Below are positions 38,342 through 64,000 of a stretch of 64,000 nt of DNA, piece after piece. The DNA lies in NCBI GenBank assembly GCA_965112735.1, contig OZ218960.1:3343088-3407087 (forward strand). Direction: 5' to 3'. The notes beneath the pieces were generated by a model, which had not been told where the DNA came from, made no database searches, and saw only the letters and a program-made list of their open reading frames with translations. The stretch's first letter is position 1. Every line of letters begins with the position of its first letter. Origin of the DNA: Phaeosaccion multiseriatum. Its lineage: Eukaryota; Protista; Ochrophyta, other classes. The position numbers and the translations under genes are program-made.

Positions 38342-38724
38342 TGTAAAAGCGACTTCAGCCGCTTAGACAAGTGGTAACACTCGGTATATTATCCGGGATG
38401 GAACCCGTTTGCAAGCCCTGCTGCTAGGCTCTCCTTACCAAGATTACCTTTTCTGACGGCTCGGTGCCACTCAGAATCTACGGAATATAGGACACACCGA
38501 CCACTCTGAGGCCTTCCAACATCCCCAATGCCTATCCCGTAACCTTCCAACATCCCCTGTACCTATCCCCCCTCGTCGACCACCACCACCGCAAGGTCTA
38601 GAACCCCAACTGTTGCGCCGTCTCCGCAGCGATGCCCATCCCCCACTTCTCGTGCAACATGGTGTAAAAGCGACTTAAGCCGAAGCGACTTAAGCCGCTT
38701 AGACAAGTGGTAACACTCGGTATA
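38342..38724 (-). mobile_element. Remnant of a second LTR family: 180-bp 3' LTR (38342-38521), PPT, integrase C-terminal tail, and a truncated second LTR copy (38663-38724)
   Basis: TGTAAAAGCG...CCTTCCAACA termini followed by TCCCC (PPT on minus). The TGTAAAAGCGAC...CGGTATA block is repeated at 38663. Peptide HEKWGMGIAAETAQQLGF* resembles the C-terminus of the large element. Confidence 0.7.
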
Positions 38725-39246
38725 GGGTTGAACAATGCCTTGTGTGGGCCGATGGGGTTGAAGTGATCCCACCGTGGTCGCAACGAGTCTGCGCGGCGTG
38801 TATGGTGCGCTCGGCGGGGTTGAACATGGACCTCTGTGGGGTTGAACAGGCCCATCTGTGGCCCCCGGTGGGCAATCTGGGCCTGATTTCGGCACGGGAG
38901 GGTTGAACAATGGCTTCCATGGGCCGGTGGGGTTGAAATGGTCCCAACATGGTCGCAATGAGTGTGCGTTGCGTCTATGGTGCGCTCGGCGGGGTTGAAC
39001 ATGGACCTCTGTGGGGTTGAACAGGCCCATCTGTGGCCCCGGGTGGGCAATCTGGGCCTGATTTCGGCACGGGGGGGTTGAACAATCGCTTCCATGGGCC
39101 GGTGGGGTTGAAATGGTCCCACCACGGTCGCAACGAGTCTGCGCTGCGTCTACAGTGTGCTCGGCGGGGTTGAACATGGGCCTCTGTGGGGTTGAACAGG
39201 CCCATCTGTGGCCCCCCGTGGGCAATCTGGGCCTGATTTCGACACG
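38725..39246. repeat. 175-bp satellite, left part (3 monomers)
   Basis: GGTTGAACAA anchor at 38726, 38901, 39076. Confidence 0.95.
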
Positions 39247-39441
39247 TGTCGAAACTACCGACAGCTAGCCTCAAAGCCAAGCTAGAGCAGAGCAGAAGCT
39301 GAAGCAAGCACCCGGAAGCCAGCCCACACGCAGGCTGCGCTTCCTTTCTTTATTACTGATTTACCGTCTAGTTGGCCCGTTTTCCGGCCGTTACACTACT
39401 GATTGGGTCCCCAAGGGACCCCAACTAGGCCACTTCTAACA
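39247..39441 (-). repeat. 3' LTR (195 bp)
   Basis: TGTTAGAAG...TTTCGACA on minus; contains AATAAA; identical by eye to 51684-51878. Confidence 0.97.
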
Positions 39442-39479
39442 TCCCCCTCACTACACCCCCGCTTCTTCCGCTAGCTCCC

Positions 39480-40488
39480 TCAGAAGCCGAGATGCGAGCG
39501 ATAGAATTGCGTCTCGTGCGCCAGCCCGCTGCCCCACTTCTCATGTTGCCGCAGACGGATCGTGCTTTCCCGTTTAGACCTATGCCCTCTTTTGACATTC
39601 ACTCCTGGATCAAGGGCAGTGTGCGGGAGGGCGTTCTCGAACGCCTCTATGGCCTTGGCGTGTCCCCGCTCCAGTAACCACTCAGCCCATTCCCAGGTCT
39701 GGAAAGTGCCGCCGTCCGACACCGCCCACCGCACGTTATACTCTCGCCGCAGTGGCAGCCCCGTGGCTTTGCGCCAGCGGAACTTCACAATCCTCGCCAG
39801 CGTGGGCACTTTCCCTTCACTCACCTCGTCCAGCTCTAAGCTACGCTGCTCCTGCATTGCGCTGGTAGCCCACTGAGGAGAGCACCAACGGATATGATAC
39901 CTGGCGAACCCTTCCGGGAGACCGAAGGGCCGCTCGCTCACCCCATCGATGAACGGCTTCGTCAAGTCTCTGTGGTACGCCCGTTGCAGCTGCTCCACAC
40001 CATTGCCGCGCACCCGTTTCATAGACAGATACACTGCGCTGCGCTGCATGACCTGATAGTGCTCTTCACTCACCCGCCCATGCTGAGCACAGTAGGCCCC
40101 CAGAGATGGCCAAGGCAAGACTGTATAAGGACCATCCCACGAGTGCTGCAGAGCCTTGAGTTGCGCTGACGGGGGCCCTTCGAGTTCTTCCCCTTCTTGC
40201 TGGGCGGCGGCACCAGGACGATACAACATCACCTTGGTGCCGGGTCGCAGGGGCGTCGGCCAACGGCGTGAGGCGTTCTTCAGCTGCAATCTCCCGTGGT
40301 AGTCGCAGCGCCTCCCATTGACCACCGCCGCAGCCGCAGCCAGGCGTGCCCGCAGTTCGTGGACCCATGCCGAGGCAGACGAAAACGACCCGTCCTCCAC
40401 TAGCGCCGGAAGCATCGCCTGTAGAGGCACCGGGGGGTGCCGACCGAACAAGGCGTAGAATGGCGCCATCCCCGTGCTCTCCTGCGAG
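39480..40488 (-). CDS. pol: Integrase C-terminal part: GPY/F motif, chromodomain (~39636-39806), HEKWG...LGF tail; out of frame with the IN core by a 1-bp deletion near 40489
   Basis: ESTGMAPFYALFGR continues the IN core YAYNAA; WDGPYTVL; EYNVRW...TWEWAEWL. Confidence 0.88.
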
Positions 40489-43400
40489 CGGCATTGTACG
40501 CATAGGTGAGCCCGGCGACGTAATCTGGCCACTGCTGCATCTGTGACTCCACGGTCGTCGCCAACATGTCCTTGATCGTGGCCATGAAGCGCTCCACCTG
40601 CCCATTGGCCTGTTGGTGCATCGGCGTCGTGAACACTTGCGACGCCGATAGAACCCGCATCACATCGCCCATGAGCGCACTGGTGAACTGCGAGCCTTGA
40701 TCACTCACCAGCACTCGGGGCACACCCAGGGTGGTGACGACATGCCGCACGAAGGCCCGAGCAATACCTTCCGCCGTATAGTCCTGTGCCCTCAAAGGCA
40801 CCACCACTGTCCACTTCGTGAACCAATCCTGAAACACCAAGAGGTACTCCTCACCGCCCATGCCCATAGGAAAGGGGCCAGCCACATCAGCGCCCATGAC
40901 CGCCCAAGGTCCATCCACCTTGGAAATGGACGACAGCGGCACAGGCTTTGGCTGCCGGCGAGGAGTCTTGCGTGTCTGGCACGCCAGACAGGAGCGGGCC
41001 CAATACAGCGCATGTGCATTCATCTTCTCCCACCATACGCGCTCTTGCAGCGCGTCTAGCATACGTCCCGGGCCTTGGTGCCCACCTGCGATGGCATCGG
41101 TGTGGGCGGCATGCAGCAAGGCTGGCCGCATCTCCTTGGGCACACATACTTGTAGCCGAGTGTGCCGCACCCGCCACCGAAAGCCCCCAGGAGCCCACTT
41201 ACGCATCAAGAGCCCGTCCTCATCCACAAAGAACTCACCCCCACCTGCATCCACCACGCCGCCGGTGGGCCCAACCTGAACACGGCGACGGAGTGCTTCC
41301 AGCTCCGCATCAGCCCGCTGCGCACGCACCCACCACGCGGCCTCGACATGCAGACTGCCACCCAAAGCTCCAGCCGCTCGTCTGTGCGCCGCGGCAGCAG
41401 GCACCGTGCCTGGTAGAGACCACCCAAACTGTCGCTCTGCCTCTCGTCGATGCCCATCAAGCTCGCGCTGCAAGGTGGACTCCTGCTCCACCGGCTCCTT
41501 GGAAACTGAATCCACTGCATCCTCAGCTTCATTACCTGCATCCCCCGCTTCTTCCGTGACCAGTAGATCTGCCGTACCAGGCTCCGACGGCGACTCCGCA
41601 GCAGGCGGCTCCCCAGGGGGGGTGATGCGGCCCTCCTCCGTAACAAGCTCCTCACCCTCGGTGGCACTAGCAACGGCAGCTGGACACACCTCCGAGGGCA
41701 GACGAGACGCATCCTCCTCAAGCTCGGCCTCCCATGCAGCCCACGCATGAGCGGCCGCGGCACCCGTTTGCTGAGCCTCCGCTGGTGTGCACATCGAGAA
41801 GTAGTCACGCGACACCTGACGGACTTGCTTCCATGGCAACTCGATCATGGTATCTAGATGACTGGCCAACGCGCCCACCACCTTCCGCTGGCGCTTATAT
41901 GTCCGCGTGAACCGCTCCACCATCTGCATCATTGTCTCCCACGAGCACTGCAGTTTGAATTGCAGTTTGGCCAGGTCGAATACCTCCAACGTCTTGGAGT
42001 GGACACCAAAGATGTAGAGCGGTGACACGTGGTCGCGATCGCCCCAATAACCAACCGCGGCCTGCATGAACCTGCCGACTTGCATCTCCTCCTGCTCCGC
42101 AGGGGTGTGAGCAGGGCTCATCGCGCTAAGCTCCACCCCCGGGCCACCATGGACGAACGGCACACACTCCGCCATGCGAGGCCAGAGGCGGAGAAGCGCC
42201 GCAGCGTCAGCAAACGCGTACTCCCGTTGAGCAGCGGACAGCGGCCGCTTCGTCCAATCGGTGGCCCGCTCCTCCTTGCTAAGGTGTTGCTCCAAAAACA
42301 TGCTGACAAGGTCCTGGAGTCCGATGAACTGAGCATGTTCGGGGCACACGCGCTTAAAGAGGTCACTGGTGTCCACCAAGTTGACGATGTGCTGGACATG
42401 CTCCGCGAGCGCCGGCCATCGGCCCAGGGCACGTTGGTCGTGACTCCAGTGGTGAGCCAGCTTCACAATCGAGGGTTCGGCCCACAGGTCCCGCAACACT
42501 TGCGCCAGTACCATCATACCCCCCGCCTTCTGAAGCGCGTCTAGATCAATCAAGAGCCCATAGTCACGCGCCACATCCGGCAGCGGCCCAACCTGCACGG
42601 CCAATTGCAGCAGCGACGCGCGCCGTCGGTGACGCGCCCACTCCGAATCCATAGCGACCACTTTGGCTGTGCGCAACTGAGTCGATAGAGCCTGCACGTG
42701 CCTCGGCGTAGACACGTACGTGCACCTCGCTGCGGAAATGTGGCTCACAAATGGCGGCATCTGACCCGGCTGCCAGGCCTCTATCACAGCCTTCTTCACA
42801 CCCAGCTGAGGTGCTAGCGTAGGCTGCCATCCACATTGCTGGAGACGCTGTGTCCAAGCACGCCGAGCAGTACCCCTGCGTGACTGCGTCGCCGACAAGT
42901 CCACCTCTGCAGTCTGCCAGGCTTGTAGGGCCTCCGCTCCGCTCTGCTGCTGGTGGTGGCACCGTTGCTGCTGTTGCTGGGCCGTCACGGCAGGCACAGG
43001 AATAGGAAGGCGTGTGTCGGCTTCGCCCTGCAGCTGTTGCGCCACTGCGAGAAAGCGAAGCAGTGCGCCCTCCGTGGGCTCCTCCCAATGAAGGCTGCAC
43101 TCGTCCCCTACCATCTCCACCAGGTTCAACTGCACCCCCATCGAAGCACACCAGGTGTGCAAGGGCGACGGCCACTCGCACTCAACCATGGCCAAGTCTA
43201 CCCCCGCATGCGTCTCCCACTCCTGCACCGGAAGCGCGTTGCGAGAGAGGCAGTCAGGCACCACCATTTGCTTCCCGGGACGATGCACAAACTGCAAGTG
43301 GTGCGTAGAGAGCCGCTCGTACCATCTGAACAGCTTGGAATTGGTATCCTTGTGCCCAGCCAACCACAACAAGGGCTGATGGTCCGTCACCACTGTGGTG

Positions 43401-45039
43401 GGGTAGTGGCAGATGTACATGGCCAGTTTACGCACACACCACACCACTGCCAGCAGCTCCAGCTCCGTGCTGCTCAGTCGCGCCTCCGTCTCCGTGGTAG
43501 CCCGACTGATGAACGTCACCACACGCTCCTCCCCGGTCGCATCTTTCTGAGAGAGCACTCCTGCTAACCCTTCCGTCGAGGCATCGGTGCTCAGGGTGAA
43601 AGTCGTCGCTGGCCCGTACTCCGGAAAAGCCAGTGCAGGGGAAGACAACAAGTCGGCAACGAGTCCATCCCAAGCTGCATCGTGCGAGGCATTCCAGGCG
43701 GTGCTCACGTCGACGCCCTTACGCAGCAGCCCATTGAGAGGCCGCACCTTGCGCGCAAACTCCGGAATGAAACGGCGAAAGTAGCTGAGCATGCCAATGA
43801 AACGCCGCACCTGCTTAACTCGATTGACGCCGCCATCCTTCGCAAGCAACCTCAACGGCTTGACCAGCTCTTGCACCGCCGCATGCTTGGCCGGGTCTGT
43901 GCGCACCCCATTCTGATCCAGCAAATGCCCGCAGAACCGCACCTCCGGTGCACCCAATACAGCCTTACTCGGCTCCAACTTGAGCTTGTGCTCCACCAAC
44001 CGCGCAAGCACAGCATCCAAATGCTCCAGATGCTGCTCAACCGTAGCCGAAAACACAGCAATATCGTCCACAAAGCATGCCACATGCTCCTGAAGCCCCT
44101 TGAGCACCTTATTCATAAGCCGCACAAAGACTGCAGGCGCATTCTTCGCGCCCTGCGGCATCACTCGCCAAGCGTAAGTACCACTGTGGCACACAAAGGT
44201 GGATATGTCCTCTTCCGCTGCTGATGCCATCGGCACATTGAAGTAGCCCGACATGATGTCCATCACCGAGAACACCTTGGAGCCATGCATCTCTGCCAGC
44301 AAATCATCAATCACCGGCATCGCAGGGGCCTCCGTGCGACACGCATCATTCAGCTGAGACAAGTCACACGTCATACGTACCACAGGCGTCCCATCCTCAT
44401 GACACTTGGTTTTGCCAGCTGCGTCCGTCTTCAAGACCGCCATCAGCGGAGTGGCCCAGCTGGAAGTGCTGGGGCGAATGATGGCAGCCGCGAGAAGCTT
44501 GTCAATCTCAATTTCAATCCCCCGCCGCAAATGGGGAGGATACCGTCGAGCGGAGCTCCGAATGGGCTGCTGATTCGCATCCTTCAGTCCCCACTCAAAG
44601 AAGAGAGTATCCGTCCGACCGTAGTCACCAGGCCTCTGACAGAATGCTTGCGACCGAGCGCGAAGGATCGCCACCAGTCCCCAGCGTTGCACCTCCGTCC
44701 AGGCACCGTCGCCAATCGTGATAGCGTGCAGGGGCGACGGTAGCTCCCTGAGCCAGAACTGAGCCCTCTCCGTAGTGAGCTTGGCACGGCGCCGCTGCTC
44801 CACCACAAGCTCTCCTGCATCCCACGACTCCACTCCCCCACCAAGACAGCGACTCTCCTGCAGCACCGTTCGCAATTGGATAAGGAGCAGCAGCGCATTG
44901 GTCATATCCTGCTCCACCTTCTCCTGCTGCTGTAATGGGCGACTAGACCACAACGACAAGAGCTGTTGGGCCCATGCGGCCACAGCAACGTCCCCAACGC
45001 CGCTCAGACCCGTGCCAGCGGCTTGGTGTACATGGGGGC
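40489..45039 (-). CDS. pol: Pol: reverse transcriptase, RNase H, DEDDy 3'-5' exonuclease, integrase (HHCC + DDE)
   Basis: RT: DIMSGYFNV, MPQGAKNAP, FVDD. RH: TDAS, ELELLAVV, TDHQPL, PDCLSR. Exo: MDSEW, HHWSHD, YAFAD. IN: H..H..C..C, ADVAGPF, SDQGSQF, NGQVERF. Confidence 0.95.
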
Positions 45040-45131
45040 TGTAGCGGTATATAAGGAGTCATTGGCTCGCTATAAACCATTCAGCGCTGAATGGTTTATA
45101 GCGAGCCAATGACTCCTTATATACCGCTACA
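45040..45131. mobile_element. 92-bp perfect-palindrome mini-element (MITE-like), TGTAG...CTACA, 4-bp TSD GGGC
   Basis: The two 46-bp arms are exact reverse complements; GGGC at 45036-45039 and 45132-45135; removing 96 bp restores the pol frame (LLLRPHVHQ). Confidence 0.92.
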
Positions 45132-48100
45132 GGGCGCAGGAGCAGTAGCGCGGTCACAGCCCCTTCCTCTGCCGCAACCAAGCACTCGCGCAGACGTCCA
45201 TACACTCGCTCTGACAGGTGAGGATACCACTCCTTGATCAACTGCACTCCTGCCATCAGAGTCCCACCGGACGTGTCACTCTGGCTACCGAGTCGCAAGG
45301 CACCATCCGCATCCAGTACCCACCCATCACCGCGTAGGTCAGTCAATGATGTGCCCACCGCCGCCGACGAGGAACCTGCCTCGGACCGTAGTGGCGGTTC
45401 CTCCGACGCCACTGACGATGGCGGTTCCTCCGACGCCACTGACGATGCCGCCCCTGTCACAGGCCTACTGGTGGAAGCAGCAGACACCGCCACGTGTTGG
45501 ACCTGCAGCGGATCTGTGCGAGAGGGTGGGAGCTCCTGCAACTGTGTCTGACGGCGTCGAGCTACCGCCGCCGTAGCCACCTGCTGCTGCACCGCATTGG
45601 ACCGCTGAACCTGCTGAGCTGCAGCCCGATCCGGTCGCTTAAAGAGCTCTTCCCGCTGGGCCTTGTGCCGTCGCTGCAATGCCCACTGGCGTTGCTGCCG
45701 TGCCTGCTGCTGTGCCGCTTGTAACCGCTTGGCCTGCTGCGTTGCCAACCATGCTGCTGTCTCCTCCGTCGAGTCAACTCGTGGTGTGTCAGCTCGTCTG
45801 GCCGGCACTCGCACTGTCCCCCCCCAGGAGGACGCCAAGGGCACTCGACGCTCCCGCGGCACCGGTCGTTGCCCCAAGTCGCTCCCCCAAGCGAGACGAA
45901 GCCCTCGGTGATGCCAGGCGCAGGAGCCGTCAGCGCACAGCTCCCGGCGCAGCGGCAAAACTTGTCGTCGCACTTGCTCATGGCGCTCCAACACTGCTTG
46001 CCGATGAACCTGGTCCCACAGCACAGGAGACTCCACAAGCATTGATGCCACTCGCCGACGTTGCCGCTGCAACCGCCCAGCACCCACTCGACTCTGACGA
46101 CACTGACTCCCCTTCTTGCCGCTGCGCTGCAAATGCTGAAACCGGGCCTTCACTGCCGGCTGAGGCACCAGAGTCGATGGCACCCCCACCTCAGTCCGTG
46201 GGTGCGTCAGGGCCTGCACCTGCACAGCTTGCAGCGGAAGCGCCGTAGCCCCCAGCTCAGCCTCCTCTGGTACCACCGAGCAGCGAACTACAGGCCCCTG
46301 CGGTGGGTACCAGACCGGCTCAGCTCCTGCTTCAGATTCAGCCGGCTGCGGCGACGCCTCCTCCTCCACCACAGACTCAACCGCCTCCCGCGCCTTGGAC
46401 CATGGCAGCCTGCGCTTCACCACACGCCTCACCATCCCGCCAAGAGCACCAAGCCAGGAGGAGGGGGCCGCTGCAGTCTCCGGCACGGTAGCTGAAGAAG
46501 CCGGCTCAGCGAGCATGAGCGCGGCCACCTCAGCGCTCGCCTCCGAGTCGAGCAAGCAAGAAGCCGTGCCGATGACCTGCCCAGGAACGACCACGATGAC
46601 CTGATTGTGGTGATTCTGCACTGTGATTCGGTAACTCTGCCCCCCAGCATACACACCATCTTTGTGCGCCACTAGAACCTGCTCGTGCTCCAGCCACCAA
46701 AGAACGTCCGCCTCTGCCGCCAAGTGTCCGTGAGCGCCCAGCTCCACCACCGCCTGGACACCCTCAGCGATACCCGTAAGCTCGAGGAGAAGGGACCCCG
46801 TCTGTCCAGGTCCCAAGCTCAAAGCCTCCACAGCACGTACCCCCCCAACAGCAGCGTTGCCGTCCACCACTGCCAGCACTTGCACAGCCAAGGCATCGGA
46901 CGGACGAGCATCCGACGTGGCCTCCTCCGAAGGAGTTGGAAGTACGTAGAGCTGCTTCGCACGATGATCGACGACTGCCCCTACTTGGGTGAAGAAATCC
47001 TGCCCCAAGAAGATGGGCCGCGCCAAGTGGTCCACCACATGAAAGGGTAGCACCGGCTGGCACGTCGGCGTGAGTCCCACCTGAAGCCAAACAAGCCCTC
47101 TGGACATAGTCTTGGCACGATTGTCAGCGTAAGACACCTGCACCCCCTTCTGCGTGGCGAGCTCTGACCGCTCCACCGTGCCATCCGCCACCAGTTGATT
47201 GAAACAGGCTGTCGAGATGCAGCCCGCTCCTGTGCACCCACTGTCCATCAAGGCTGTAAAGGCGCTCTTCTCCACGGCGTCGGCGGCACTGGCATCCCGT
47301 GGAGCGGTAGCGGCCAAGCAATGCCGAGCGTCACTGACCTTCACTGGCGAGCGCACCGTAACCTCGATCGTGTGACCCCGCCCTGCTGGGACTGCCGTAC
47401 GACCCGTGGCAGCCACCGCTTCGGCAATCTCAGCTCTCCGCACTGCTGTCTGCAAGGCGGCCACCCCCCCTGGAGCGTCCTCCATCCGCACACGGTAGAG
47501 AGCCAAGGCAGCGCGTTGCACACACCCCTCACACATAGCACACTCACTGTCAACAGCCGACGCACAGGCACAAGCTCCCGGACTGGGGGGCTCCTTGAGC
47601 AGAGCGACTCCCGCGCCAGGCTCCAAGGCGACTGCATGACAAGCACGCACAAACGGATCAAGGGCAAGCGTGTGCAGCCCCGCCTCCTCCGTCAACACAG
47701 CCGTGAAAGCAGCCTCCTGCTGATGCTGCTGTGCTGCTGCTGTCGCACGAGCACGCTGCCTCCGCTGCTTCCTCCGTACCCGCCGTCGAAGAGCTACTGC
47801 GCGCCTCGCTGCATCCTGCTGCTCCTGTGCCGCCTGCTCGTCACCCTTGCGCAGCGCTGCCTTCGCCTGCTGGGCACGCCGTCTCAACCACTTTGCTGCC
47901 ACCCTCTGCTCAGTCCTGCTCCGCCCCTCCGCCGGAGGCACCGCTGGAGACGTCAGCGGCAGGGTCCGAAGGCTCTGCTCCTGCTGCTGAAGCTGAACCT
48001 CCTCCTGCTGCTGAAGCTGAACCTGCCACACCCACTGTTCATGTTCCCCAGTGGGAGTGAATGGCGGAAGAGATGCTGCCCCGAGCGGCAAGGCCCGCAC

Positions 48101-49047
48101 GAGGCCCATGGCCTTGGCCTGTCGAGGCGTCACCAGGGAGCACAGCTGCTGAGGCTGAAGCTCATCGCTTGACGGTGGGCTGGCTTTTGCAACCTGGACG
48201 GCAGCCTCGACAGCATGACCCTGCTGCTGCTCCAATTGCTCCTGCTGCCCCCCCGCCACATGCGGCTGCTGCTCGGCAACCTGGACGACTACCTCGACAG
48301 CAGGACCCTGCTGCTGCTCCAGTTGCACCTGCGGTCCCGCCGGCTGCTGCTGCAGCAGCTGCTGCTGCTGGCCCAGCCGCTGTTGCCGCTCCTTCGTCGC
48401 ACGCAGTGCGCGCTGTTCTGGGAAGGCACACGCACGCACCCGCTCCAAACCCCTTGCATCCATCCAGACAGACTCGTGTTGCGCAACGGTTGCCGCCTCG
48501 CACTCAACCTCCCCAACTGCCAACGGTGGCGCCTGCTGCTCCGGACACTCACCCGCAACGACTGCATCCTCCTGGCGCAGAGGCAGCGGCAGCGCGACGT
48601 CAGGGCCGCTCGACGGCTCGACGGCAGAGCCGGGCTGCGGTGCTTCTACTAAGCACACGGAGCGTACCACTGGACACGGCTGCTGCTGCTGCTGCTGCTG
48701 CTCCGGCGGCGGCAGCTGCTCGACTGCGGAAGCCGCTGGCGCAGCCTCCTGGTGCGCGCCCTCCACGACTACCTCTACTGCACCCTGCGCCTGCTGCTGT
48801 ACCGCCGTCATCTCCGTGTGCTCACCAGCAACGACTGCATCCGGGCCGTCAGTGCCCCTCGACTGCTCGACCACAGAGCGTACCACAGGACCCGGCTGCT
48901 GCTCTAGCTGCCGCTCCGGCTGCTGGCGCTGCGGCTGCTGCGGCTGCCGCTCCAATGCTGGCAGCTGCTCGACCGCGGACGGCGCAGGCACAGCCTCTCT
49001 GTGCGCACCCTCCCCGACTACCTCTACTGCACGGCGCTGCTGCTGCG

Positions 49048-49088
<41 letters not shown>

Positions 49089-49372
49089 TGCTTGCGTCGC
49101 AGCTCAGCAAGTCTGTCGCCACACCACATGTCACTCCGATAAACTCTGATGGCAGGTGACTCCTGCTCTACACGACTAGCCTGACCGCTCCTACGCTGAG
49201 CGTCGGCATGGGGCAAAGGTGGGTCTGACAAACAAGATAGGTGCGAAGTACATTCATTATCTTCTACACTGCTCTTGCCCGCCCTCCCCCCCTGTTCCCC
49301 CACGCCGACGCTATCCTCACGCGCTGCGGTCGTGGTCCCCAGGGCTGCTGGCCAAGCAGCCCCGGGGCACCG
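45132..49372 (-). CDS. pol: Pol N-terminal part: long Q/A/V-rich spacer, aspartic protease (~46945-47265), second long spacer; same frame as gag and as RT
   Basis: FTALMDSGCT...IS, FHVVD...IFLGQDF protease motifs; 51562-49303 and 45061-44983 are both multiples of 3. Confidence 0.85.
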
Positions 49373-49375
49373 TCA
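49334..49375 (-). promoter_or_regulatory. Candidate stop-codon readthrough signal: UGA-CGG followed by a 13-bp stem-loop
   Basis: Minus strand TGA CGGTG CCCCGGGGCTGCT TGGCC AGCAGCCCTGGGG ACC. Confidence 0.6.
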
Positions 49376-49483
49376 GCCTTCGAACTTGAACCCGTCCTGC
49401 GCCGCCAGAGTGCCCGCCACCATTGCTGCTACGGCTTCAGACATGTCGGACTCCTGGTGCAGCGCTCTGACCGCCTGCCGCCG

Positions 49484-51541
49484 CTACACGCGGCTCACAA
49501 TGCCGAGCAGCTCCTCACGCGTAGCCGGGATGGCGTTGCATTCTATCCAACCATGGCCGGCGCGGCGACAAGTCATGCAGTTAAATGGGGCATTGCCGTT
49601 GCCACGCTGCTTGACCGGGCCGTGGAACAGCAAGGGCCGCTGCTGGGTGGGCGTGAGCCGCGGCTGCTGCGCCGGCTGCTGCTGCTGTTGCTGCTGCTGC
49701 TGCTCCACTGCATTCACCCCCACCTCCAGATGCTGCTCCACCGAATTCACGGCCACTTCCAGATGCTGCTCCACCGCATTCACGGCCACTCCCCCGCGCG
49801 GAGTGCGCAGACCACCACCACCACCACGGGTCCGCGGAGCCCCACCAGTAGAAGAGAGCGTAAGTGGACTACCAGCCTGGAGCACACGAGTCGCGGAAGG
49901 AAATGCCTTCTTGTAGGCGGTGTAGAAGGCACTCCACGAGGGGGTCGCCGACTCCCAGCGCAGCCAGAAGTTGGTCATGCCGTCAGTTAATGGCAACGAG
50001 CCGGAACGAAGCCGAATGTCGACCTCTGGCCGCAGCACCGCCAGCAGGCCCGTAACCAAGGCTTGCTCATCCGTGGCCTGCCCCGTCACCTGCGCTAGAC
50101 ACAGAGAGAGTTCCGCCAGCTTGGTGAGCAGCCTGGCGAGCGCCTGGTTCACCTCAGCAGGAACGGTGGACGCTTCCAGAGGCTTGGCCTCCCGCACCAA
50201 CGTCTGGACAAGCTGCTGGAGGCCGTCTCGCGCAACAGGAACGCCGAAGAGACGCAACAGACACCTCGCGAGCAATTGGAACTGTGCACTCTCCGTCTCC
50301 CACTCCAACGTGACGTGCCGGTCGCCCTCCATCCACGACGCACCCTTCTGAGCCTCCGCCAGGACAGTGGCCCGATCCACTGCACCCAAGTCGGCCAGCA
50401 CTCGCTGCTCCATCACCCGCCCTTGGCCCGGAAGCACGGACCCAGTAGAAGTCAAGATCTCCTGTCCTTGCAGAATGCTCACCCAGTCGTACATGGTTGT
50501 GAGCACCACAGCACGAGGATGAGGCTGTCCAGCCGCATCGAATAGAGAGGGAAGTTTCTGCTCCTGGAGCACACGGATAGCACTCACGGGCGGCGTGATC
50601 GTCTGCACCGTAGGACGGGCGGGCGCCTGCAGCACACCCAGTGCCTGCTGCCGTGCCCGCTCCCGCTCCCGTTCCATGTCCCGCTGTAGCATATCCTTAA
50701 CCTGCTGCTGCAGCACCTCTACCCCCCCCTGTGCGGCATCCTTAACCTGCTGGAGCTGCGCCGCTAACAGCTCCCGCTGCATCGTCTCCACCTCCAACTG
50801 GGCAGCACCCTCAGGCGCAGCCGGCTGCGGCTGCGCCGCCATCTGTCGCTGCAGCTCCGCCGCCACCTGCTGCTGCAGCTCCACCGCAAACTCCCGCTGC
50901 TGCTCCGCCCTCGAGAGCCGCAGCACCTCCAGTTCCCGCTGGAGGGCCGCCGTCTCCGCCTTGCTCTCCCGCAGTTGGGCCGCCATGAGCTGCGCAGCTT
51001 GGTGCTGCGTCAGCATCTCAAGCCCCTCCTGGAGAACCCGAGTGTCCTCCTGCTCCGGTGTCTTCTCTCCCTCCGCTGGCTGATCCACCACCCGAGCCCC
51101 GCCAGACGCACCAACAAGAGGGACCAAGGGCGTTCCAACCACATCCCACACCGTGCTCTCCTCCTGGCCCACCGACTCTGCAGCACCCGAGTGGAAAGAA
51201 ACCTCCGACTCCGCCACCGGCAGCGGCCTCACCCCAGCAGCAGGAGGGGAAGCGGCAGCAGCCGTAATCGCAGACCCCTCACAAAAAGAGGGCGACTCCA
51301 GGGACTCCTCCCCCCTACGCAACGCCTCCCGCACACGGTCCAAAGCCCCAGGGCTGGCAGTGACCTCCGCAGGAGGAGCAGCAGCTTCCGATACCACCGA
51401 CCCCACGTCCGCAGCACCACCATCAGCTCCACCGCCCTCAGCGTCACTCGTAGCGCCCTCCGCCGATGCAAGACTCAGGACGTCCATCCCCTCCTCCTCA
51501 GCCATTGCCACCCTAGCAGCGTGGCGACGCAGGAAGTCCAT
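49484..51541 (-). CDS. gag: Gag with coiled-coil region and a CCHC zinc knuckle
   Basis: CMTCRRAGHGWIEC (C-X2-C-X4-H-X4-C) near the C-terminus; first ATG at 51541, 143 nt downstream of the 5' LTR. Confidence 0.85.
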   Translation of the reverse strand: MDFLRRHAARVAMAEEEGMDVLSLASAEGATSDAEGGGADGGAADVGSVVSEAAAPPAEVTASPGALDRVREALRRGEESLESPSFCEGSAITAAAASPPAAGVRPLPVAESEVSFHSGAAESVGQEESTVWDVVGTPLVPLVGASGGARVVDQPAEGEKTPEQEDTRVLQEGLEMLTQHQAAQLMAAQLRESKAETAALQRELEVLRLSRAEQQREFAVELQQQVAAELQRQMAAQPQPAAPEGAAQLEVETMQRELLAAQLQQVKDAAQGGVEVLQQQVKDMLQRDMERERERARQQALGVLQAPARPTVQTITPPVSAIRVLQEQKLPSLFDAAGQPHPRAVVLTTMYDWVSILQGQEILTSTGSVLPGQGRVMEQRVLADLGAVDRATVLAEAQKGASWMEGDRHVTLEWETESAQFQLLARCLLRLFGVPVARDGLQQLVQTLVREAKPLEASTVPAEVNQALARLLTKLAELSLCLAQVTGQATDEQALVTGLLAVLRPEVDIRLRSGSLPLTDGMTNFWLRWESATPSWSAFYTAYKKAFPSATRVLQAGSPLTLSSTGGAPRTRGGGGGLRTPRGGVAVNAVEQHLEVAVNSVEQHLEVGVNAVEQQQQQQQQQPAQQPRLTPTQQRPLLFHGPVKQRGNGNAPFNCMTCRRAGHGWIECNAIPATREELLGIVSRV

Positions 51542-51674
51542 CCCCTCCTCAGCCAGTGCCACCCTAGCAAGCCTAAAGCCGTCAACGGCCTAACGCTGGG
51601 CAGCTGGAAGCAAAGCTCAAGCCAACACAATAAATCAGTCTCAAAGCTGGATCTCAGACCTGTGTCTTTCGGGT

Positions 51675-51683
51675 CTTCCGGGT
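51675..51683 (-). promoter_or_regulatory. Non-tRNA primer-binding site ACCCGGAAG, complementary to LTR positions 51747-51755 (self-priming candidate)
   Basis: Directly abuts the LTR-terminal CA; no TGG; exact 9-nt inverted match inside the LTR. Confidence 0.65.
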
Positions 51684-51878
51684 TGTCGAAACTACCGACA
51701 GCTAGCCTCAAAGCCAAGCTAGAGCAGAGCAGAAGCTGAAGCAAGCACCCGGAAGCCAGCCCACACGCAGGCTGCGCTTCCTTTCTTTATTACTGATTTA
51801 CCGTCTAGTTGGCCCGTTTTCCGGCCGTTACACTACTGATTGGGTCCCCAAGGGACCCCAACTAGGCCACTTCTAACA
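51684..51878 (-). repeat. 5' LTR (195 bp)
   Basis: Identical by eye to 39247-39441. Confidence 0.97.
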
Positions 51879-54800
51879 CACGGGAGGGTTGAGCAACGCC
51901 TTCTGTGGGCCGGTGGGGTTGAAATGGTGCCACCACGGTCGCAATGAGTCTGCGCTGCGTCTATGGTGTGCTCGGCGGGGCTGAACATGGGCCTCTGTGG
52001 GGTTGAACAGGCCCATCTGTGGACCCGGGTGGGCAATCTGGGTCTGATTTCGGAACGGTAGGGTTGAACAATGCCTTGTGTGGGCCGATGGGGTTGAAAT
52101 GGTCCCACCATGGTCGCAACGAGTCTGCGCGGCGTCTATGGTGTGCTCGGCGGGGTTGAACATGGGCCTCCGTGGGGTTGAACAGGCCCATCAGTGGGCC
52201 CCGGTGGGCAATCTGGGCCTGATTTCGGCACGGGAGGGTTGAACAATGCCTTCCATGGGCCGGTGGGGTTGAAATGGTCCCACCATGGTCGCAATGAGTG
52301 TGCATCGCGTCAATGGTGTGCTCGGTGGGGATGAACATGGGCCTCTGTGGGGTTGAACAGGCCCATCTGTGGACCCCGGTGGGCAATCTGGGCCTGATTT
52401 CGACACGGGAGGGTTGAACAATGCCTTGTGTGGGCCGGGGGGGTTGAAATGGTCCCACCATGGTCGCAATGAGTCTTCGATGCGTCTATGGTGTGCTCGG
52501 TGGGGTTGAACACGGGCCTCTGTGGGGTTGAACAGGCCCATCTGTGGCCCCCGGTGGGCAATCTGGGCCTGATTTCGGCACGGGAGGGTTGAACAATCGC
52601 TTCCATGGGCCGGTGGTGTTGAAATGGTGCCACCATAATCGCGATGAGTCTTCGATGCGTCCATGGTGTGCTCGGCGGGGTTGAACACGGGCCTCTGTGG
52701 GGTTGAACAGGCCCATCTGTGGGCCCCGGTGGGCAATCTGGGCCTGATTTCGGCACGGGAGGGTTGAACAATCGCTTCCATGGGACGGTGGGGTTAAAAT
52801 GGGCCCACCACGGTGGCAATGAGTCTTCGATGCGTCTATGGTGTGCTCGGTGGGGTTGAACATGGGCCTCTGTGGGGTTGAACAGGCCCATCTGTGGGCC
52901 CCGGTGGGCAATCTTGGGCCTGATTTCGGCACGGGAGGGTTGAACAATGCCTTCCATGGGCCGGTGGGGTTGAAATGGTCCCACCATGGTCGCAATGAGT
53001 GTGCATCGCGTCTATGGTGTGCTCGGTGGGGTTGAACATGGACATCTATGGGGTTGAACAGGCCCATCTGTGGGCACCCCCTGTGGGCAATCTGGGCCTG
53101 ATTTCGACACGGGAGGGTTGAACAATGCCTTCCATGGGCCGGTGTGGTTGAAATGGTCCCACCATGGTGGCAATGAGTCTGCGATGCGTCGAAGGTGCGC
53201 TCGGCGGGGTTGAACATGGGCCTCTGTGGGGTTGAACAGGCCCATCTGTGGACCCCGGTGGGCAATCTGGGCCTGATTTCGACACGGGAGGGTTGAACAA
53301 TGCCTTCTGGGGGCCGGTGGGGTTGAAATGGTCCCACCATGGTGGCAATGAGTCTTCGATGCGTCTATGGTGTGCTCGGTGGGGTTGAACACGGGCCTCT
53401 GCGGGGTTGAACAGGCCCATCTGTGGGCCCCGGTGGGCAATCTGGGCCTGATTTCGGCACGGGAGGGTTGAACAATCGCTTCCATGGGCCGGTGGGGTTG
53501 AAATGGTCCCACCATGGTCGCAATGAGTGTGCATCGCGTCAATGGTGTGCTCGGTGGGGATGAACATGGGCCTCTGTGGGGTTGAACAGGCCCATCTGTG
53601 GCGCCCCCACGGTGGGCAAAATCTGGGCCTGATTTCGACCCGGGAGGGTTGAACAATGGCTTCCATGGGCCGGTGGGGTTGAAATGGTCCCAACATGGTC
53701 GCAACGAGTCTGCGATGCGTCCATGGTGCGCTCGGCGGGGTTGAACATGGGCCTCTGTGGGGTTGAACAGGCCCATCTGTGGGCCCCGGTGGGCAATCTG
53801 GGCCTGATTTCGGCACGGGAGGGTTGAACAATGCCTTCCATGGGCCGGTGGGGTTGAAATGGTCCCACCATGGTCGCAACGAGTCTGCGCGGCGTCTATG
53901 GTGTGCTCGGCGGGGTTGAACATGGGTCTCCGTGGGGTTGAACAGGCCCATCTGTGGGCTCCCCCGGTGGGCAATCTGGGCCTGATTTCGACACGGGAGG
54001 GTTGAACAATGCCTTCCATGGGCCGGTGGGGTTGAAATGGTCCCACCATGGTCGCAATGAGTCTGCGCTGCGTCCATGGTGCGCTCGGCGGGGTTGAACA
54101 TGGGCCTCTGTGGGGTTGAACAGGCCCATCTGTGGGCTCCCCCGGTGGGCAATCTGGGCCTGATTTCGACCCGGGAGGGTTGAACAATGCCTTCCATGGG
54201 CCGGCGGGGTTGAAATGGTCCCACCATGGTCGCAATGAGTGTGCCGGGCGTCTATGGCGCGCTCGGCGGGGTTGAACATGGACCTCTGTGGGGTTGAACA
54301 GGCCCATCTGTGGGCACCCCCCGGTGGGCAATCTGGGCCTGATTTCGACATGGGAGGGTTGAACAATGCCTTCCATGGGCCGGTGGGGTTGAAATGGTCC
54401 CACCATGGTCGCAATGAGTGTGCAACGCGTCTATGGTGCGCTCGGCGGGGCTGAACATGGGCCTCTGTGGGGTTGAACAGGCCCATCTGTGGGCACCCCC
54501 GGTGGGCAATCTGGGCCTGATTTCGACACGGGAGGGTTGAACAATGCCTTCTGTGGGCCGGTGTGGTTGAAATGGTCCCACCATGGTCGCAACGAGTCTG
54601 CGATGCGTCCATGGTGCGCTCGGCGGGGTTGAACATGAACCGCTGTGGTGTTGAACAGGCCCATCTGTGGGCCCCGGTGGGCAATCTGGGCCTGATTTCG
54701 ACATGGGAGGGTTGAACAATGCCTTCGATGGGTCGGTGGGGTTGAAATGGTCCCACCATGGTGGCAATGAGTCGGCATCGCGTCCGTGGTGCGCTCGGCG

Positions 54801-56105
54801 GGGTTGAACATGGACCTCTGTGGGGTTGAACAGGCCCATCTGTGGGTCCCCCTCGGTCGGCAATCTGGGCCTGATTTCGACCCGGGAGGGTTGAACAATG
54901 CCTGCCATGGGCCGGTGGGGTTGAATAGGTCCCACCATGGTCGCAATGAGTGTGTGCTGCGTCCATGGTGCGCTCGGCGGGGTTGAACATGGACCTCTGT
55001 GGGGTTGAACAGGCCCATCTGTGGGCACCCCCGGTGGGCAATCTGGGCCTGATTTCGACACGGGAGGGTTGAACAATGCCTTCCATGGGCCGGTGGGGTT
55101 GAAATGGTCCCACCATGGTGGCAATGAGTCTGCGCGGCGTCCATGGTGCGCTCGGCGGGGTTAAACATGGACCTCTGTGGGGTTGAACAGGCCCATCTGT
55201 GGGTCCCCCCCGGTGGGCAATCTGGGCCTGATTTCGACCCGGGAGGGTTGAACAATCGCTTCCATGGACCGGTGGGGTTGAAATGGCCCCACCATGGTCG
55301 CAATGAGTCTGCCGGGCGTCTATGGTGCGCTCGGCGGGGTTGAACATGGACCTCTGTGGGGTTGAACAGGCCCATCTGTGGGTCCCCCCCGGTGGGCAAT
55401 CTGGGCCTGATTTCGACATGGGAGGGTTGAACAATGCCTTCCATGGGCCGGTGGGGTTGAAATGGTCCCACCATGGTCGCAATGAGTCTGCGCGGCGTCA
55501 ATGGTGCGCTCGGCGGGGTTGAACATGGACCGCTGTGGGGTTGAACAGGCCCATCTGTGGGCCCCGGTGGACAATCTGGGCCTGATTTCGACACGGGAGG
55601 GTGGAACAATGGCTTCCATGCACCGGTGGGGTTAAAATGGTCTAACCACGGTCGCAATGAGTGTGTATCGCGTCCATGGTGCGCTCGGCGGGGTTGAACA
55701 TGGGCCTCTGTGGGGTTGAACAGGCCCATCTGTGGGCACCCCCGGTGGGCAATCTGGGCCTGATTTCGACATGGGAGGGTTGAACAATGCCTTCCATGGG
55801 CCGGTGGGGTTGAAATGGTCCCACCATGGTCGCAATGAGTGTGCGCGACGTCCATGGTGCGCTCGGTGGGGTTGAACATGGACCGCTGTGGGGTTGAACA
55901 GGCCCATCTGTGGGCCCCGGTGGGCAATCTGGGCCTGATTTCGACCCGGGAGGGTTGAACAATGCCTTCTGTGGGCCGGTGGGGTTGAAATGGTCCCACC
56001 ATGGTCGCAATGAGTGTACGCGGCGTCTATGGTGCGCTCGGCGGGGTTGAACATGGACCTCTGTGGGGTTGAACAGGCCCATCTGTGGGTTCCCCCGGTG
56101 GGCAA
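51879..56105. repeat. 175-179 bp satellite, right part (~24 monomers)
   Basis: Anchors at 51887, 52062, 52237 (175-bp period) and 55067, 55246 (179-bp period); four GGGTTGAA motifs per monomer. Confidence 0.97.
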
Positions 56106-56238
56106 GGGTTAGGGTTAAAGGCTTGTTCGCTTAAGTTGTCAAAATAGGGGTCCGAGTTAGAGGTCGAGAGGCACACCGTTGGATAGCCTAGGGTGAGGGC
56201 TTTAATATTGACCTTATATCATAGGTCGAACTCGGTTT

Positions 56239-59200
56239 AGGCCAGGGCCAGGGCCAGGCCAGGCCAGGCCAGGCCAGGCCAGGCCAGGCCAGGCCAGGCC
56301 AGGCCAGGCCAGGCCAGGCCAGGCCAGGCCAGGCCAGGCCAGGCCAGGCCAGGCCAGGCCAGGCCAGGCCAGGCCAGGCCAGGCCAGGCCAGGCCAGGCC
56401 AGGCCAGGCCAGGCCAGGCCAGGCCAGGCCAGGCCAGGCCAGGCCAGGCCAGGCCAGGCCAGGCCAGGCCAGGCCAGGCCAGGCCAGGCCAGGCCAGGCC
56501 AGGCCAGGCCAGGCCAGGCCAGGCCAGGCCAGGCCAGGCCAGGCCAGGCCAGGCCAGGCCAGGCCAGGCCAGGCCAGGCCAGGCCAGGCCAGGCCAGGCC
56601 AGGCCAGGCCAGGCCAGGCCAGGCCAGGCCAGGCCAGGCCAGGCCAGGCCAGGCCAGGCCAGGCCAGGCCAGGCCAGGCCAGGCCAGGCCAGGCCAGGCC
56701 AGGCCAGGCCAGGCCAGGCCAGGCCAGGCCAGGCCAGGCCAGGCCAGGCCAGGCCAGGCCAGGCCAGGCCAGGCCAGGCCAGGCCAGGCCAGGCCAGGCC
56801 AGGCCAGGCCAGGCCAGGCCAGGCCAGGCCAGGCCAGGCCAGGCCAGGCCAGGCCAGGCCAGGCCAGGCCAGGCCAGGCCAGGCCAGGCCAGGCCAGGCC
56901 AGGCCAGGCCAGGCCAGGCCAGGCCAGGCCAGGCCAGGCCAGGCCAGGCCAGGCCAGGCCAGGCCAGGCCAGGCCAGGCCAGGCCAGGCCAGGCCAGGCC
57001 AGGCCAGGCCAGGCCAGGCCAGGCCAGGCCAGGCCAGGCCAGGCCAGGCCAGGCCAGGCCAGGCCAGGCCAGGCCAGGCCAGGCCAGGCCAGGCCAGGCC
57101 AGGCCAGGCCAGGCCAGGCCAGGCCAGGCCAGGCCAGGCCAGGCCAGGCCAGGCCAGGCCAGGCCAGGCCAGGCCAGGCCAGGCCAGGCCAGGCCAGGCC
57201 AGGCCAGGCCAGGCCAGGCCAGGCCAGGCCAGGCCAGGCCAGGCCAGGCCAGGCCAGGCCAGGCCAGGCCAGGCCAGGCCAGGCCAGGCCAGGCCAGGCC
57301 AGGCCAGGCCAGGCCAGGCCAGGCCAGGCCAGGCCAGGCCAGGCCAGGCCAGGCCAGGCCAGGCCAGGCCAGGCCAGGCCAGGCCAGGCCAGGCCAGGCC
57401 AGGCCAGGCCAGGCCAGGCCAGGCCAGGCCAGGCCAGGCCAGGCCAGGCCAGGCCAGGCCAGGCCAGGCCAGGCCAGGCCAGGCCAGGCCAGGCCAGGCC
57501 AGGCCAGGCCAGGCCAGGCCAGGCCAGGCCAGGCCAGGCCAGGCCAGGCCAGGCCAGGCCAGGCCAGGCCAGGCCAGGCCAGGCCAGGCCAGGCCAGGCC
57601 AGGCCAGGCCAGGCCAGGCCAGGCCAGGCCAGGCCAGGCCAGGCCAGGCCAGGCCAGGCCAGGCCAGGCCAGGCCAGGCCAGGCCAGGCCAGGCCAGGCC
57701 AGGCCAGGCCAGGCCAGGCCAGGCCAGGCCAGGCCAGGCCAGGCCAGGCCAGGCCAGGCCAGGCCAGGCCAGGCCAGGCCAGGCCAGGCCAGGCCAGGCC
57801 AGGCCAGGCCAGGCCAGGCCAGGCCAGGCCAGGCCAGGCCAGGCCAGGCCAGGCCAGGCCAGGCCAGGCCAGGCCAGGCCAGGCCAGGCCAGGCCAGGCC
57901 AGGCCAGGCCAGGCCAGGCCAGGCCAGGCCAGGCCAGGCCAGGCCAGGCCAGGCCAGGCCAGGCCAGGCCAGGCCAGGCCAGGCCAGGCCAGGCCAGGCC
58001 AGGCCAGGCCAGGCCAGGCCAGGCCAGGCCAGGCCAGGCCAGGCCAGGCCAGGCCAGGCCAGGCCAGGCCAGGCCAGGCCAGGCCAGGCCAGGCCAGGCC
58101 AGGCCAGGCCAGGCCAGGCCAGGCCAGGCCAGGCCAGGCCAGGCCAGGCCAGGCCAGGCCAGGCCAGGCCAGGCCAGGCCAGGCCAGGCCAGGCCAGGCC
58201 AGGCCAGGCCAGGCCAGGCCAGGCCAGGCCAGGCCAGGCCAGGCCAGGCCAGGCCAGGCCAGGCCAGGCCAGGCCAGGCCAGGCCAGGCCAGGCCAGGCC
58301 AGGCCAGGCCAGGCCAGGCCAGGCCAGGCCAGGCCAGGCCAGGCCAGGCCAGGCCAGGCCAGGCCAGGCCAGGCCAGGCCAGGCCAGGCCAGGCCAGGCC
58401 AGGCCAGGCCAGGCCAGGCCAGGCCAGGCCAGGCCAGGCCAGGCCAGGCCAGGCCAGGCCAGGCCAGGCCAGGCCAGGCCAGGCCAGGCCAGGCCAGGCC
58501 AGGCCAGGCCAGGCCAGGCCAGGCCAGGCCAGGCCAGGCCAGGCCAGGCCAGGCCAGGCCAGGCCAGGCCAGGCCAGGCCAGGCCAGGCCAGGCCAGGCC
58601 AGGCCAGGCCAGGCCAGGCCAGGCCAGGCCAGGCCAGGCCAGGCCAGGCCAGGCCAGGCCAGGCCAGGCCAGGCCAGGCCAGGCCAGGCCAGGCCAGGCC
58701 AGGCCAGGCCAGGCCAGGCCAGGCCAGGCCAGGCCAGGCCAGGCCAGGCCAGGCCAGGCCAGGCCAGGCCAGGCCAGGCCAGGCCAGGCCAGGCCAGGCC
58801 AGGCCAGGCCAGGCCAGGCCAGGCCAGGCCAGGCCAGGCCAGGCCAGGCCAGGCCAGGCCAGGCCAGGCCAGGCCAGGCCAGGCCAGGCCAGGCCAGGCC
58901 AGGCCAGGCCAGGCCAGGCCAGGCCAGGCCAGGCCAGGCCAGGCCAGGCCAGGCCAGGCCAGGCCAGGCCAGGCCAGGCCAGGCCAGGCCAGGCCAGGCC
59001 AGGCCAGGCCAGGCCAGGCCAGGCCAGGCCAGGCCAGGCCAGGCCAGGCCAGGCCAGGCCAGGCCAGGCCAGGCCAGGCCAGGCCAGGCCAGGCCAGGCC
59101 AGGCCAGGCCAGGCCAGGCCAGGCCAGGCCAGGCCAGGCCAGGCCAGGCCAGGCCAGGCCAGGCCAGGCCAGGCCAGGCCAGGCCAGGCCAGGCCAGGCC

Positions 59201-63996: not shown

Positions 63997-64000
63997 GGAA

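Follow-up and report, generated by a model that had tools for sequence, protein, structure and literature searches.

It is commonly assumed that the replication of retroelements involves no 3'-5' exonuclease. A stretch of 64,000 nucleotides from Phaeosaccion multiseriatum (assembly GCA_965112735.1, contig OZ218960.1, positions 3,343,088 to 3,407,087; the whole stretch is called the window here) raises the question whether one retroelement does otherwise. A first-pass annotation, made from the letters alone, had placed a DEDDy-type exonuclease in frame between the ribonuclease H (RNase H, RH) and the integrase (IN) of the Pol polyprotein of a Ty3/Gypsy long terminal repeat (LTR) retrotransposon. 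Is this domain real, is it maintained, and what might it do for the element?

The exonuclease domain within Pol

The Pol open reading frame (ORF) of the window copy lies at 40400-44983 on the minus strand and comprises 1527 codons. Pfam profiles matched it in the order reverse transcriptase (RT), RNase H, DNA_pol_A_exo1, Integrase_H2C2 and rve; the exonuclease is thus found in frame at the position first described. The parts of Pol are listed below (families A and B are the two groups of copies described in the following section).

43925-44365, minus strand: reverse transcriptase (RVT_1), residues 207-353 of ORF 40400-44983; Pfam E 1e-27
43307-43696, minus strand: RNase H (RT_RNaseH and RT_RNaseH_2), residues 430-559; Pfam E 1.3e-28; RT_RNaseH alone, residues 459-559
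42719-43306, minus strand: linker between RNase H and exonuclease, about 195 amino acids, partly Gln-rich; no Pfam match; 47% identical between families A and B
42170-42718, minus strand: predicted DEDDy 3'-5' exonuclease domain (PF01612), residues 756-938; Pfam E 1.4e-20
41144-42169, minus strand: spacer between exonuclease and integrase, about 340 amino acids; no family match; 40% identical between families A and B
40964-41143, minus strand: integrase zinc-binding domain (Integrase_H2C2), residues 1281-1340; Pfam E 1.2e-15
40631-40891, minus strand: integrase catalytic core (rve), residues 1365-1451; E 1.8e-06 and 28.6 bits, under the Pfam cut-off of 32.6 bits
39480-40532, minus strand: integrase C-terminal region, in another frame in the window copy; SH3/GPY-like stretch at 40116-40241, chromodomain-like motif at 39627-39800; Pfam negative

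The match to DNA_pol_A_exo1 (PF01612; nucleotides 42170-42718) reached 74.3 bits against a cut-off of 23.6 bits (E 1.4e-20) and is far beyond chance. The profile scan thus recovered the DnaQ-fold nuclease that had at first been recognized by its motifs. Furthermore, PF01612 scored above the curated threshold in intact polyproteins of both families. The motifs named at first, from VAMDSEW to YxxxD, were all present in the translation of the ORF:

42638-42661, minus strand: ExoI, VVAMDSEW
42599-42616, minus strand: SLLQLA
42542-42556, minus strand: LLIDL
42437-42463, minus strand: ExoII, KLAHHWSHD
42368-42382, minus strand: NLVDT
42293-42322, minus strand: GLQDLVSMFL
42206-42220, minus strand: ExoIII, YAFAD
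42647-42649, 42641-42643, 42437-42439, 42218-42220 and 42206-42208, minus strand: codons of the catalytic residues D779, E781, D849, Y922 and D926, respectively

All five DEDDy residues are present in the window copy, i.e., DxE in ExoI, D in ExoII and YxxxD in ExoIII; the four acidic residues and the tyrosine are intact, as had been stated. Among 41 aligned homologues, D, E, Y and D were invariant and the ExoII D was conserved in at least 90%. Judged by these residues, the domain is a catalytically complete DEDDy 3'-5' exonuclease.

The domain profile matched solved structures of a Mut-7 homolog, NrnC (NanoRNase C), RNase D and Rrp6. An AlphaFold2 model of the domain based on 41 sequences gave a predicted local distance difference test score (pLDDT) of 91.4 and a predicted template modeling score (pTM) of 0.88. 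When this model was compared with the PDB by Foldseek, the top matches were Nibbler EXO, Rrp6, RNase D, the WRN exonuclease and EXD2, all with probability 1.0, and template modeling (TM) scores were 0.63-0.73 for Nibbler, Rrp6, RNase D and WRN. The best match in the ESM Atlas was a MUT7 cluster (TM 0.82). The modeled domain has an RNase H-like alpha/beta fold of the DnaQ type, and profile, model and fold search agree with the early assignment to the mut-7/EXD3/WRN-exo/RNase D nucleases.

Pfam detected no Mut7-C (PF01927) in Pol, either in the window copy or in the intact polyproteins of families A and B, and no helicase partner accompanies the exonuclease. An HRDC domain was not found after the exonuclease; the 161 amino acids downstream gave no Pfam match even at E 10, and the ESM Atlas features of this stretch (0.80) were uninformative. 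The spacer consists of about 110 possibly globular amino acids followed by an acidic, Ala/Pro-rich low-complexity stretch. The approximately 110 amino acids located right after the exonuclease (41684-42166) are globular-looking and conserved between both families, again with no Pfam match; they could constitute a novel partner domain of the nuclease.

A maximum-likelihood tree united families A and B and one metagenome fragment in a clade with 99/99 support and a long stem. Mut-7-like proteins were the only candidate sister group, a weak grouping (80/87) to which a warning of long-branch attraction applies, and the cellular PF01612 genes of the host were not close to the exonuclease of the element. 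The domain shares its fold and the DEDDy motifs with cellular Mut-7/Nibbler (EXD3), WRN, RNase D and Rrp6, its best matches in sequence and structure, but identity to these proteins is just 20-32%, and it differs from them by its long isolated branch and by the lack of Mut7-C, HRDC and helicase in the element.

Copies, selection and occurrence elsewhere

The exonuclease segment gave 45 matches in the assembly (67 Mb, 22 contigs); natural copies only were compared, without consensus or reconstructed sequences. Copies with the order RT-RH-exonuclease-IN, for which the first-pass annotation had proposed a search, fall into two families. Family A has about 19 copies with 95-100% protein identity in the exonuclease segment, family B about 10 copies with 58-60%. 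Identity between the two families is 59% for the exonuclease but reaches 78% for RT-RH. Their longest intact frames have 3303 codons (A; L031:85-9993, minus strand) and 3199 codons (B; L037:212-9808, plus strand), and both contain RT, RH, PF01612 and IN in that order. A Pol frame of 3303 codons is unusually large for a Gypsy element.

Wherever a copy of either family has a full-length RT, the exonuclease follows downstream of it at a fixed distance. The next most similar RTs of the genome are 32-35% identical, and no PF01612 match was found near any of them. From the fixed position in both families and the absence near other RTs we therefore conclude that the exonuclease is older than the split between A and B and is limited to the clade they form.

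The catalytic residues DEDYD were invariant between families A and B. Examination of 18 family-A copies likewise revealed invariant DEDYD residues and no stop inside the domain. The ratio of nonsynonymous to synonymous substitution rates (dN/dS, Nei-Gojobori) between the families was about 0.24 for the exonuclease, about 0.43 for the RH-exonuclease linker, about 0.35 for the exonuclease-IN spacer, and 0.04-0.08 for RT, RH and IN; synonymous sites are saturated in this comparison, and the ratios are therefore, if anything, too high. A count of distinct variants of the exonuclease among family-A copies gave 34 synonymous and 28 nonsynonymous ones, and the corresponding ratio at the polymorphism level (pN/pS) was 0.26. 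The exonuclease is under purifying selection. The first-pass annotation had allowed for a domain present in a single copy and evolving neutrally; it is neither.

Two contigs from other sequencing projects cover this part of Pol. A Logan contig of 2628 nt from a second study of the same organism covers 42105-44732 with 16 differences and contains RT, RH and exonuclease contiguously. From a plant-metagenome run, a 725-nt contig was obtained over 42633-43357 with about 88% identity; it bridges the RH-exonuclease linker and the start of the domain and represents a diverged relative. Misassembly is excluded because these independent contigs span the junctions. We are nearly certain that the domain is real, fused and selected.

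To find the domain outside this genome, 1.84 billion cluster representatives were searched exhaustively with HMMER. The search returned one match below 1e-30 (P0001, E 4e-40), a 186-amino-acid fragment on a 917-bp metagenome contig which contains the exonuclease only and is too short to show a surrounding Pol; the matches after P0001 had E-values of about 1e-17 or weaker and were cellular PF01612 proteins. The eight longest profile matches contained no RT or IN, their partner domains being Mut7-C, tRNA_edit, ankyrin and DEDDh_C, and PF01612 was likewise missing from the 120 best RT-RH homologues, whose identity did not exceed 39%. A word-indexed search with the 1527-amino-acid query, covering proteins of 840-2670 amino acids only, gave no match for the exonuclease region, and two scans of metagenome contigs with exonuclease patterns gave no close relative. 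Fold searches returned giant-virus and phage exonucleases and no retro-transcribing virus from the viral models of BFVD; in the ESM Atlas, RT or integrase occurred in none of the 10 family sets listed for the 99 nearest models. These collections under-represent eukaryotic transposons, and absence from them is only suggestive because genome annotations usually mask transposons.

No description of an RT-RH-exonuclease-IN fusion was found in the literature searched, with Repbase, GyDB and REXdb lying outside this search. A review of LTR elements names a DnaQ-like exonuclease among accessory domains (PMC6338049); of the sources it cites, the domain was confirmed in the rotifer paper discussed below and is not mentioned in one other. 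In a detailed transposon survey of Ectocarpus, no exonuclease is mentioned for the Gypsy elements (PMC12477816). An exonuclease inside a Gypsy Pol between RNase H and integrase is a layout absent from the papers and protein collections searched.

Element type, surroundings and host

The element comprises 12,632 bp (39247-51878, minus strand), matching the 12.6 kb estimated at first, with 195-bp direct repeats as ends. These LTRs run TGTCG...TAACA with TG..CA termini and form a pair with 100% identity, and a 4-bp target duplication, CACG, is present on both sides of the element. Its remaining features are as follows:

39247-51878, minus strand: complete LTR retrotransposon copy with 195-bp direct repeats, TG..CA and CACG duplication, located in a 175-bp satellite array
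51684-51878, minus strand: 5' LTR, 195 bp, direct repeat
39247-39441, minus strand: 3' LTR, 195 bp, direct repeat with the same sequence as the 5' LTR
49484-51562, minus strand: putative gag ORF, 692 amino acids; no Pfam match
45059-49303, minus strand: N-terminal Pol part, ORF of 1414 amino acids with Gln-rich low-complexity stretches and a protease-like motif inside
45037-45133, no strand assigned: insertion (about 97 bp) interrupting the Pol frame; absent by blastn from the intact copy C5:4361000-4374500
40494, no strand assigned: 1-bp indel relative to the intact C5 copy; frame shift inside the integrase, so that the ORF stops at 40400 and continues as ORF 39480-40532

The window copy is defective relative to the intact copy on contig 5. 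Its identical LTRs together with the broken frame suggest that it was mobilized in trans. The element is young and recently active, as follows from the 100% identical LTRs, the target duplication and ten copies sharing an identical RT-RH protein.

An aspartic-protease-like motif with DSG, LMDSGCTG, is located at 47228-47251 in the N-terminal Pol part, and a weak gag-asp_proteas match (E 0.009) was obtained in the corresponding region of family B; these two observations are all that points to a protease. The Pol part of about 1400 amino acids upstream of the RT (45059-49303; L031, L037) contains long Gln/Ala-rich tracts, with the protease-like motif as the only recognizable family.

The element is a Ty3/Gypsy-type LTR retrotransposon: RVT_1, RT_RNaseH, Integrase_H2C2 and rve are found in this order, and its nearest database relatives are Gypsy-type Pols. 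The first-pass annotation had gone further and proposed a new chromovirus lineage. A Ty3/Gypsy element with an in-frame DEDDy domain was indeed found, but the chromovirus label is not established, as Pfam gave no chromodomain in the intact polyproteins and the integrase tail even at E 10. The chromodomain-like C-terminal motif was aligned by hhalign to SH3 and chromodomain tails with a probability of 20% (E 1e-3), language-model features of the integrase tail resembled SH3_Tf2-1 and Chromo clusters at 0.94, and the AlphaFold2 model of the tail (pLDDT 39) was too poor for use. Furthermore, in Ectocarpus, which like the host is a stramenopile alga, the Gypsy lineages with a chromodomain are reported to be unrelated to chromoviruses (PMC12477816). 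With chromodomain Ty3/Gypsy elements, i.e., chromoviruses and the Ectocarpus lineages (PMC12477816), the element shares the order protease-RT-RH-IN, short LTRs, a 4-bp duplication, an SH3/GPY-like stretch and a chromodomain-like motif after the integrase, and copies in repeat-rich or subterminal regions. It differs from them in that no Pfam chromodomain was found and that no Pol of the protein collection exceeds 39% identity to its RT; none of those Pols carries PF01612.

Another Gypsy lineage was observed at G000:C10:8220-9431. Its RT is 34% identical, its open frame comprises 4622 codons, and no PF01612 match is located nearby.

The satellite array around the element occupies 38718-39246 and 51879-56123 with 175-bp units; the unit length is 175-178 bp, and about 27 units are present in the window. 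Genome-wide, the satellite is mostly found within tens of kilobases of contig ends (C7, C9, C8, C16, C3, C15, C5, C13 and C6) and looks like a subterminal repeat. Copies of the element families concentrate in repeat-rich regions and near contig ends. Satellite-specific integration was ruled out, with satellite sequence in one of the 14 other locatable family-A 3' flanks. In the region G000:C14:2.30-2.75 Mb, both families with the exonuclease are densely represented by full copies and fragments, nested insertions among them; the region is probably heterochromatic or centromere-like.

From 56240 to 64000 the window consists of a perfect (CCAGG)n array (at least 7.7 kb), which reaches the end of its contig, C11. 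The ends with this pentamer are those on the left of C5, C7, C9 and C16 (L051-L054, L057) and on the right of C5 and C11 (L052, L056); several contig ends besides that of the window have it in mirror orientation, and CCCTAA telomere repeats are present at still others (left ends of C11 and C8). The pentamer could represent another type of repeat at chromosome ends, or else a subterminal array at which the assembly stopped.

The host is an ochrophyte (photosynthetic stramenopile) alga and neither a green alga nor a plant. Genes rbcL and rbcS of the red type were found on AT-rich plastid contigs, with rbcL 89-91% identical to sequences of Vaucheria, Chrysoparadoxa, brown algae and raphidophytes. 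In red-type plastids rbcL and rbcS are usually adjacent; here, a Lys/Glu-rich ORF of 266 amino acids is located between them (L047/L049, G000:C18:86460-89493; the same on C21). Plastid sequence is present on two contigs, C18 and C21. Additionally, an Argonaute/Piwi gene is present in the host genome. Among the sequencing runs listed, none is recorded as RNA.

Precedents and possible functions

The only retrotransposon precedent found is that of bdelloid rotifers, where Juno and Vesta LTR elements and Athena/Terminon Penelope-like elements carry a DEDDy exonuclease as separate ORF3 (PMC5408684, PMC6431247); the first-pass annotation had correctly named separate ORFs in these animals. Like Juno, Vesta and Athena, the element described here is a retroelement with an acquired DEDDy exonuclease of the RNase D/Mut-7/WRN type, and 3'-end processing was proposed for the rotifer elements. 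In Juno and Vesta, however, ORF3 is located downstream of pol, whereas here the exonuclease shares one frame with RNase H and integrase and lies between them. The motif of the bdelloid ORF3 was reported as DEED and its intragenomic evolution as not significantly off neutrality, in contrast to the full DEDDy set under purifying selection found here. The hosts are animals in one case and a stramenopile alga in the other, and the comparison with the rotifer exonucleases is by description.

Among DNA transposons, Dada elements of Laccaria and Ectocarpus contain a DEDDy domain inside their DDE transposase (Kojima and Jurka 2013, PMC3706591), and KolobokD encodes a DEDDh exonuclease (PMC9587614). 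Here, too, a DnaQ-fold exonuclease is found in or beside the integrating enzyme, the authors propose 3'-end processing in transposition, and one Dada host, Ectocarpus, is also a stramenopile alga. In contrast to the present element, these are cut-and-paste transposons without reverse transcription, and the insertion point lies inside the catalytic core of the transposase and not between RH and IN. A further parallel is the ExoN of nidoviruses and arenaviruses, a DnaQ-fold 3'-5' exonuclease within the replicase polyprotein of an RNA-copying element (PMC7968707). ExoN differs in being of the DEDDh type and in serving RNA-dependent RNA replication, and its roles in proofreading or immune evasion have been demonstrated, whereas those considered here for the Pol domain are conjectural.

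We infer that the domain is an active nuclease. By analogy with the rotifer, Dada and KolobokD elements we tentatively favor, at a little under an even chance, a role in trimming 3' ends that arise when the element replicates. As a translated portion of Pol, the exonuclease would enter the virus-like particle together with RT and integrase, the three in constant proportion. In the particle, it would most likely act on the 3' ends of replication intermediates and strip unpaired or non-templated 3' nucleotides from complementary DNA (cDNA) or primer ends; once these ends are cleaned, strand transfers and end-joining by integrase could go ahead. End trimming is favored because the placement in Pol delivers the domain to the particle, because unrelated mobile elements needing clean 3'-OH ends recruited the same fold, and because the authors of those element studies propose likewise (PMC5408684, PMC3706591, PMC9587614).

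Several points weigh against end trimming. The exonuclease is less constrained than RT, RH and IN (dN/dS 0.24 versus 0.04-0.08). 3' processing is already a function of canonical integrases, and LTR elements much larger than this one, as far as we know, do without an exonuclease. Furthermore, the nearest relatives in sequence and structure, Mut-7/Nibbler, are small-RNA-trimming exoribonucleases, and counter-silencing fits equally well. In that case the domain would be a transposon-encoded suppressor of RNA silencing which trims or degrades the silencing small RNAs, or other RNAs, of the host. We consider this role unlikely, with evidence on both sides. Proteins containing Mut7-C are among the nearest sequence relatives, Nibbler EXO and a MUT7 cluster are the top structural matches, the clade of the element stands loosely with Mut-7-like proteins in the tree, and the host has an Argonaute/Piwi gene. 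However, the tree grouping is weak (80/87, with the long-branch warning), Pol has no Mut7-C domain, a suppressor within a particle-bound Gag-Pol readthrough product would be scarce and sequestered, and a silencing role was treated just cautiously for the rotifer elements (PMC5408684).

Slightly less likely again is a proofreading function, in which the exonuclease would excise misincorporations of the RT and raise its fidelity, permitting a Pol ORF of 9.9 kb and a genome of 12.6 kb. The domain by which family-A DNA polymerases proofread belongs to PF01612, the exonuclease and RT-RH belong to the same polypeptide, and the unusually long coding capacity is intact in several copies. The closest relatives, however, are RNA-processing or WRN-type enzymes and not polymerase exonuclease domains, and a partly low-complexity linker of about 195 amino acids separates RH and exonuclease. 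Retroviruses and LTR elements of similar or larger size, to our knowledge, have no proofreading; genome size is a weak argument, since there are larger LTR elements with no domain of this kind. The wider claim that the Pol-embedded DEDDy domain provides proofreading or mismatch excision to the RT in cis, which would make this the first error-corrected retroelement and a counterpart of nidovirus ExoN, appears slightly less probable still.

It is improbable that the domain is kept for nucleic-acid binding or for structure while its catalysis does not matter, the situation of Maelstrom and EXD1, which are inactive DEDD derivatives. Such precedents are cited in the rotifer study (PMC5408684), and the constraint on the domain is moderate and not strong. 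This view conflicts with the five catalytic residues, which are the same in both families despite an identity of 59% and do not vary among the 18 family-A copies examined; binding-only DEDD derivatives typically lose these residues. The least probable explanation by far, a recently captured host exon, nested insertion or misassembly without function for the element, could appeal to the defects of the window copy (1-bp integrase frameshift, insertion of about 97 bp) but is already contradicted by about 30 copies in two old families with the same in-frame position, by purifying selection on the domain, by the lack of a close host paralogue, and by contigs from other studies that span the junctions.

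Mobile elements of unrelated types have captured DnaQ-fold exonucleases again and again (PMC5408684, PMC3706591, PMC9587614), which raises the question of their repeated recruitment by rotifer LTR and Penelope-like elements, Dada, Kolobok and the Gypsy lineage described here. The RT-RH-exonuclease fusion is a naturally linked polymerase and exonuclease and could have practical interest. In P. multiseriatum, an exonuclease that is catalytically complete by its residues is part of the Pol of a currently active element and was kept by selection through the divergence of two families. This suggests that the element uses it to trim or edit its own nucleic acid ends, and two questions become testable: whether a reverse-transcribing element can edit or polish its own cDNA ends, and whether such an element counters small-RNA silencing by a nuclease of its own.

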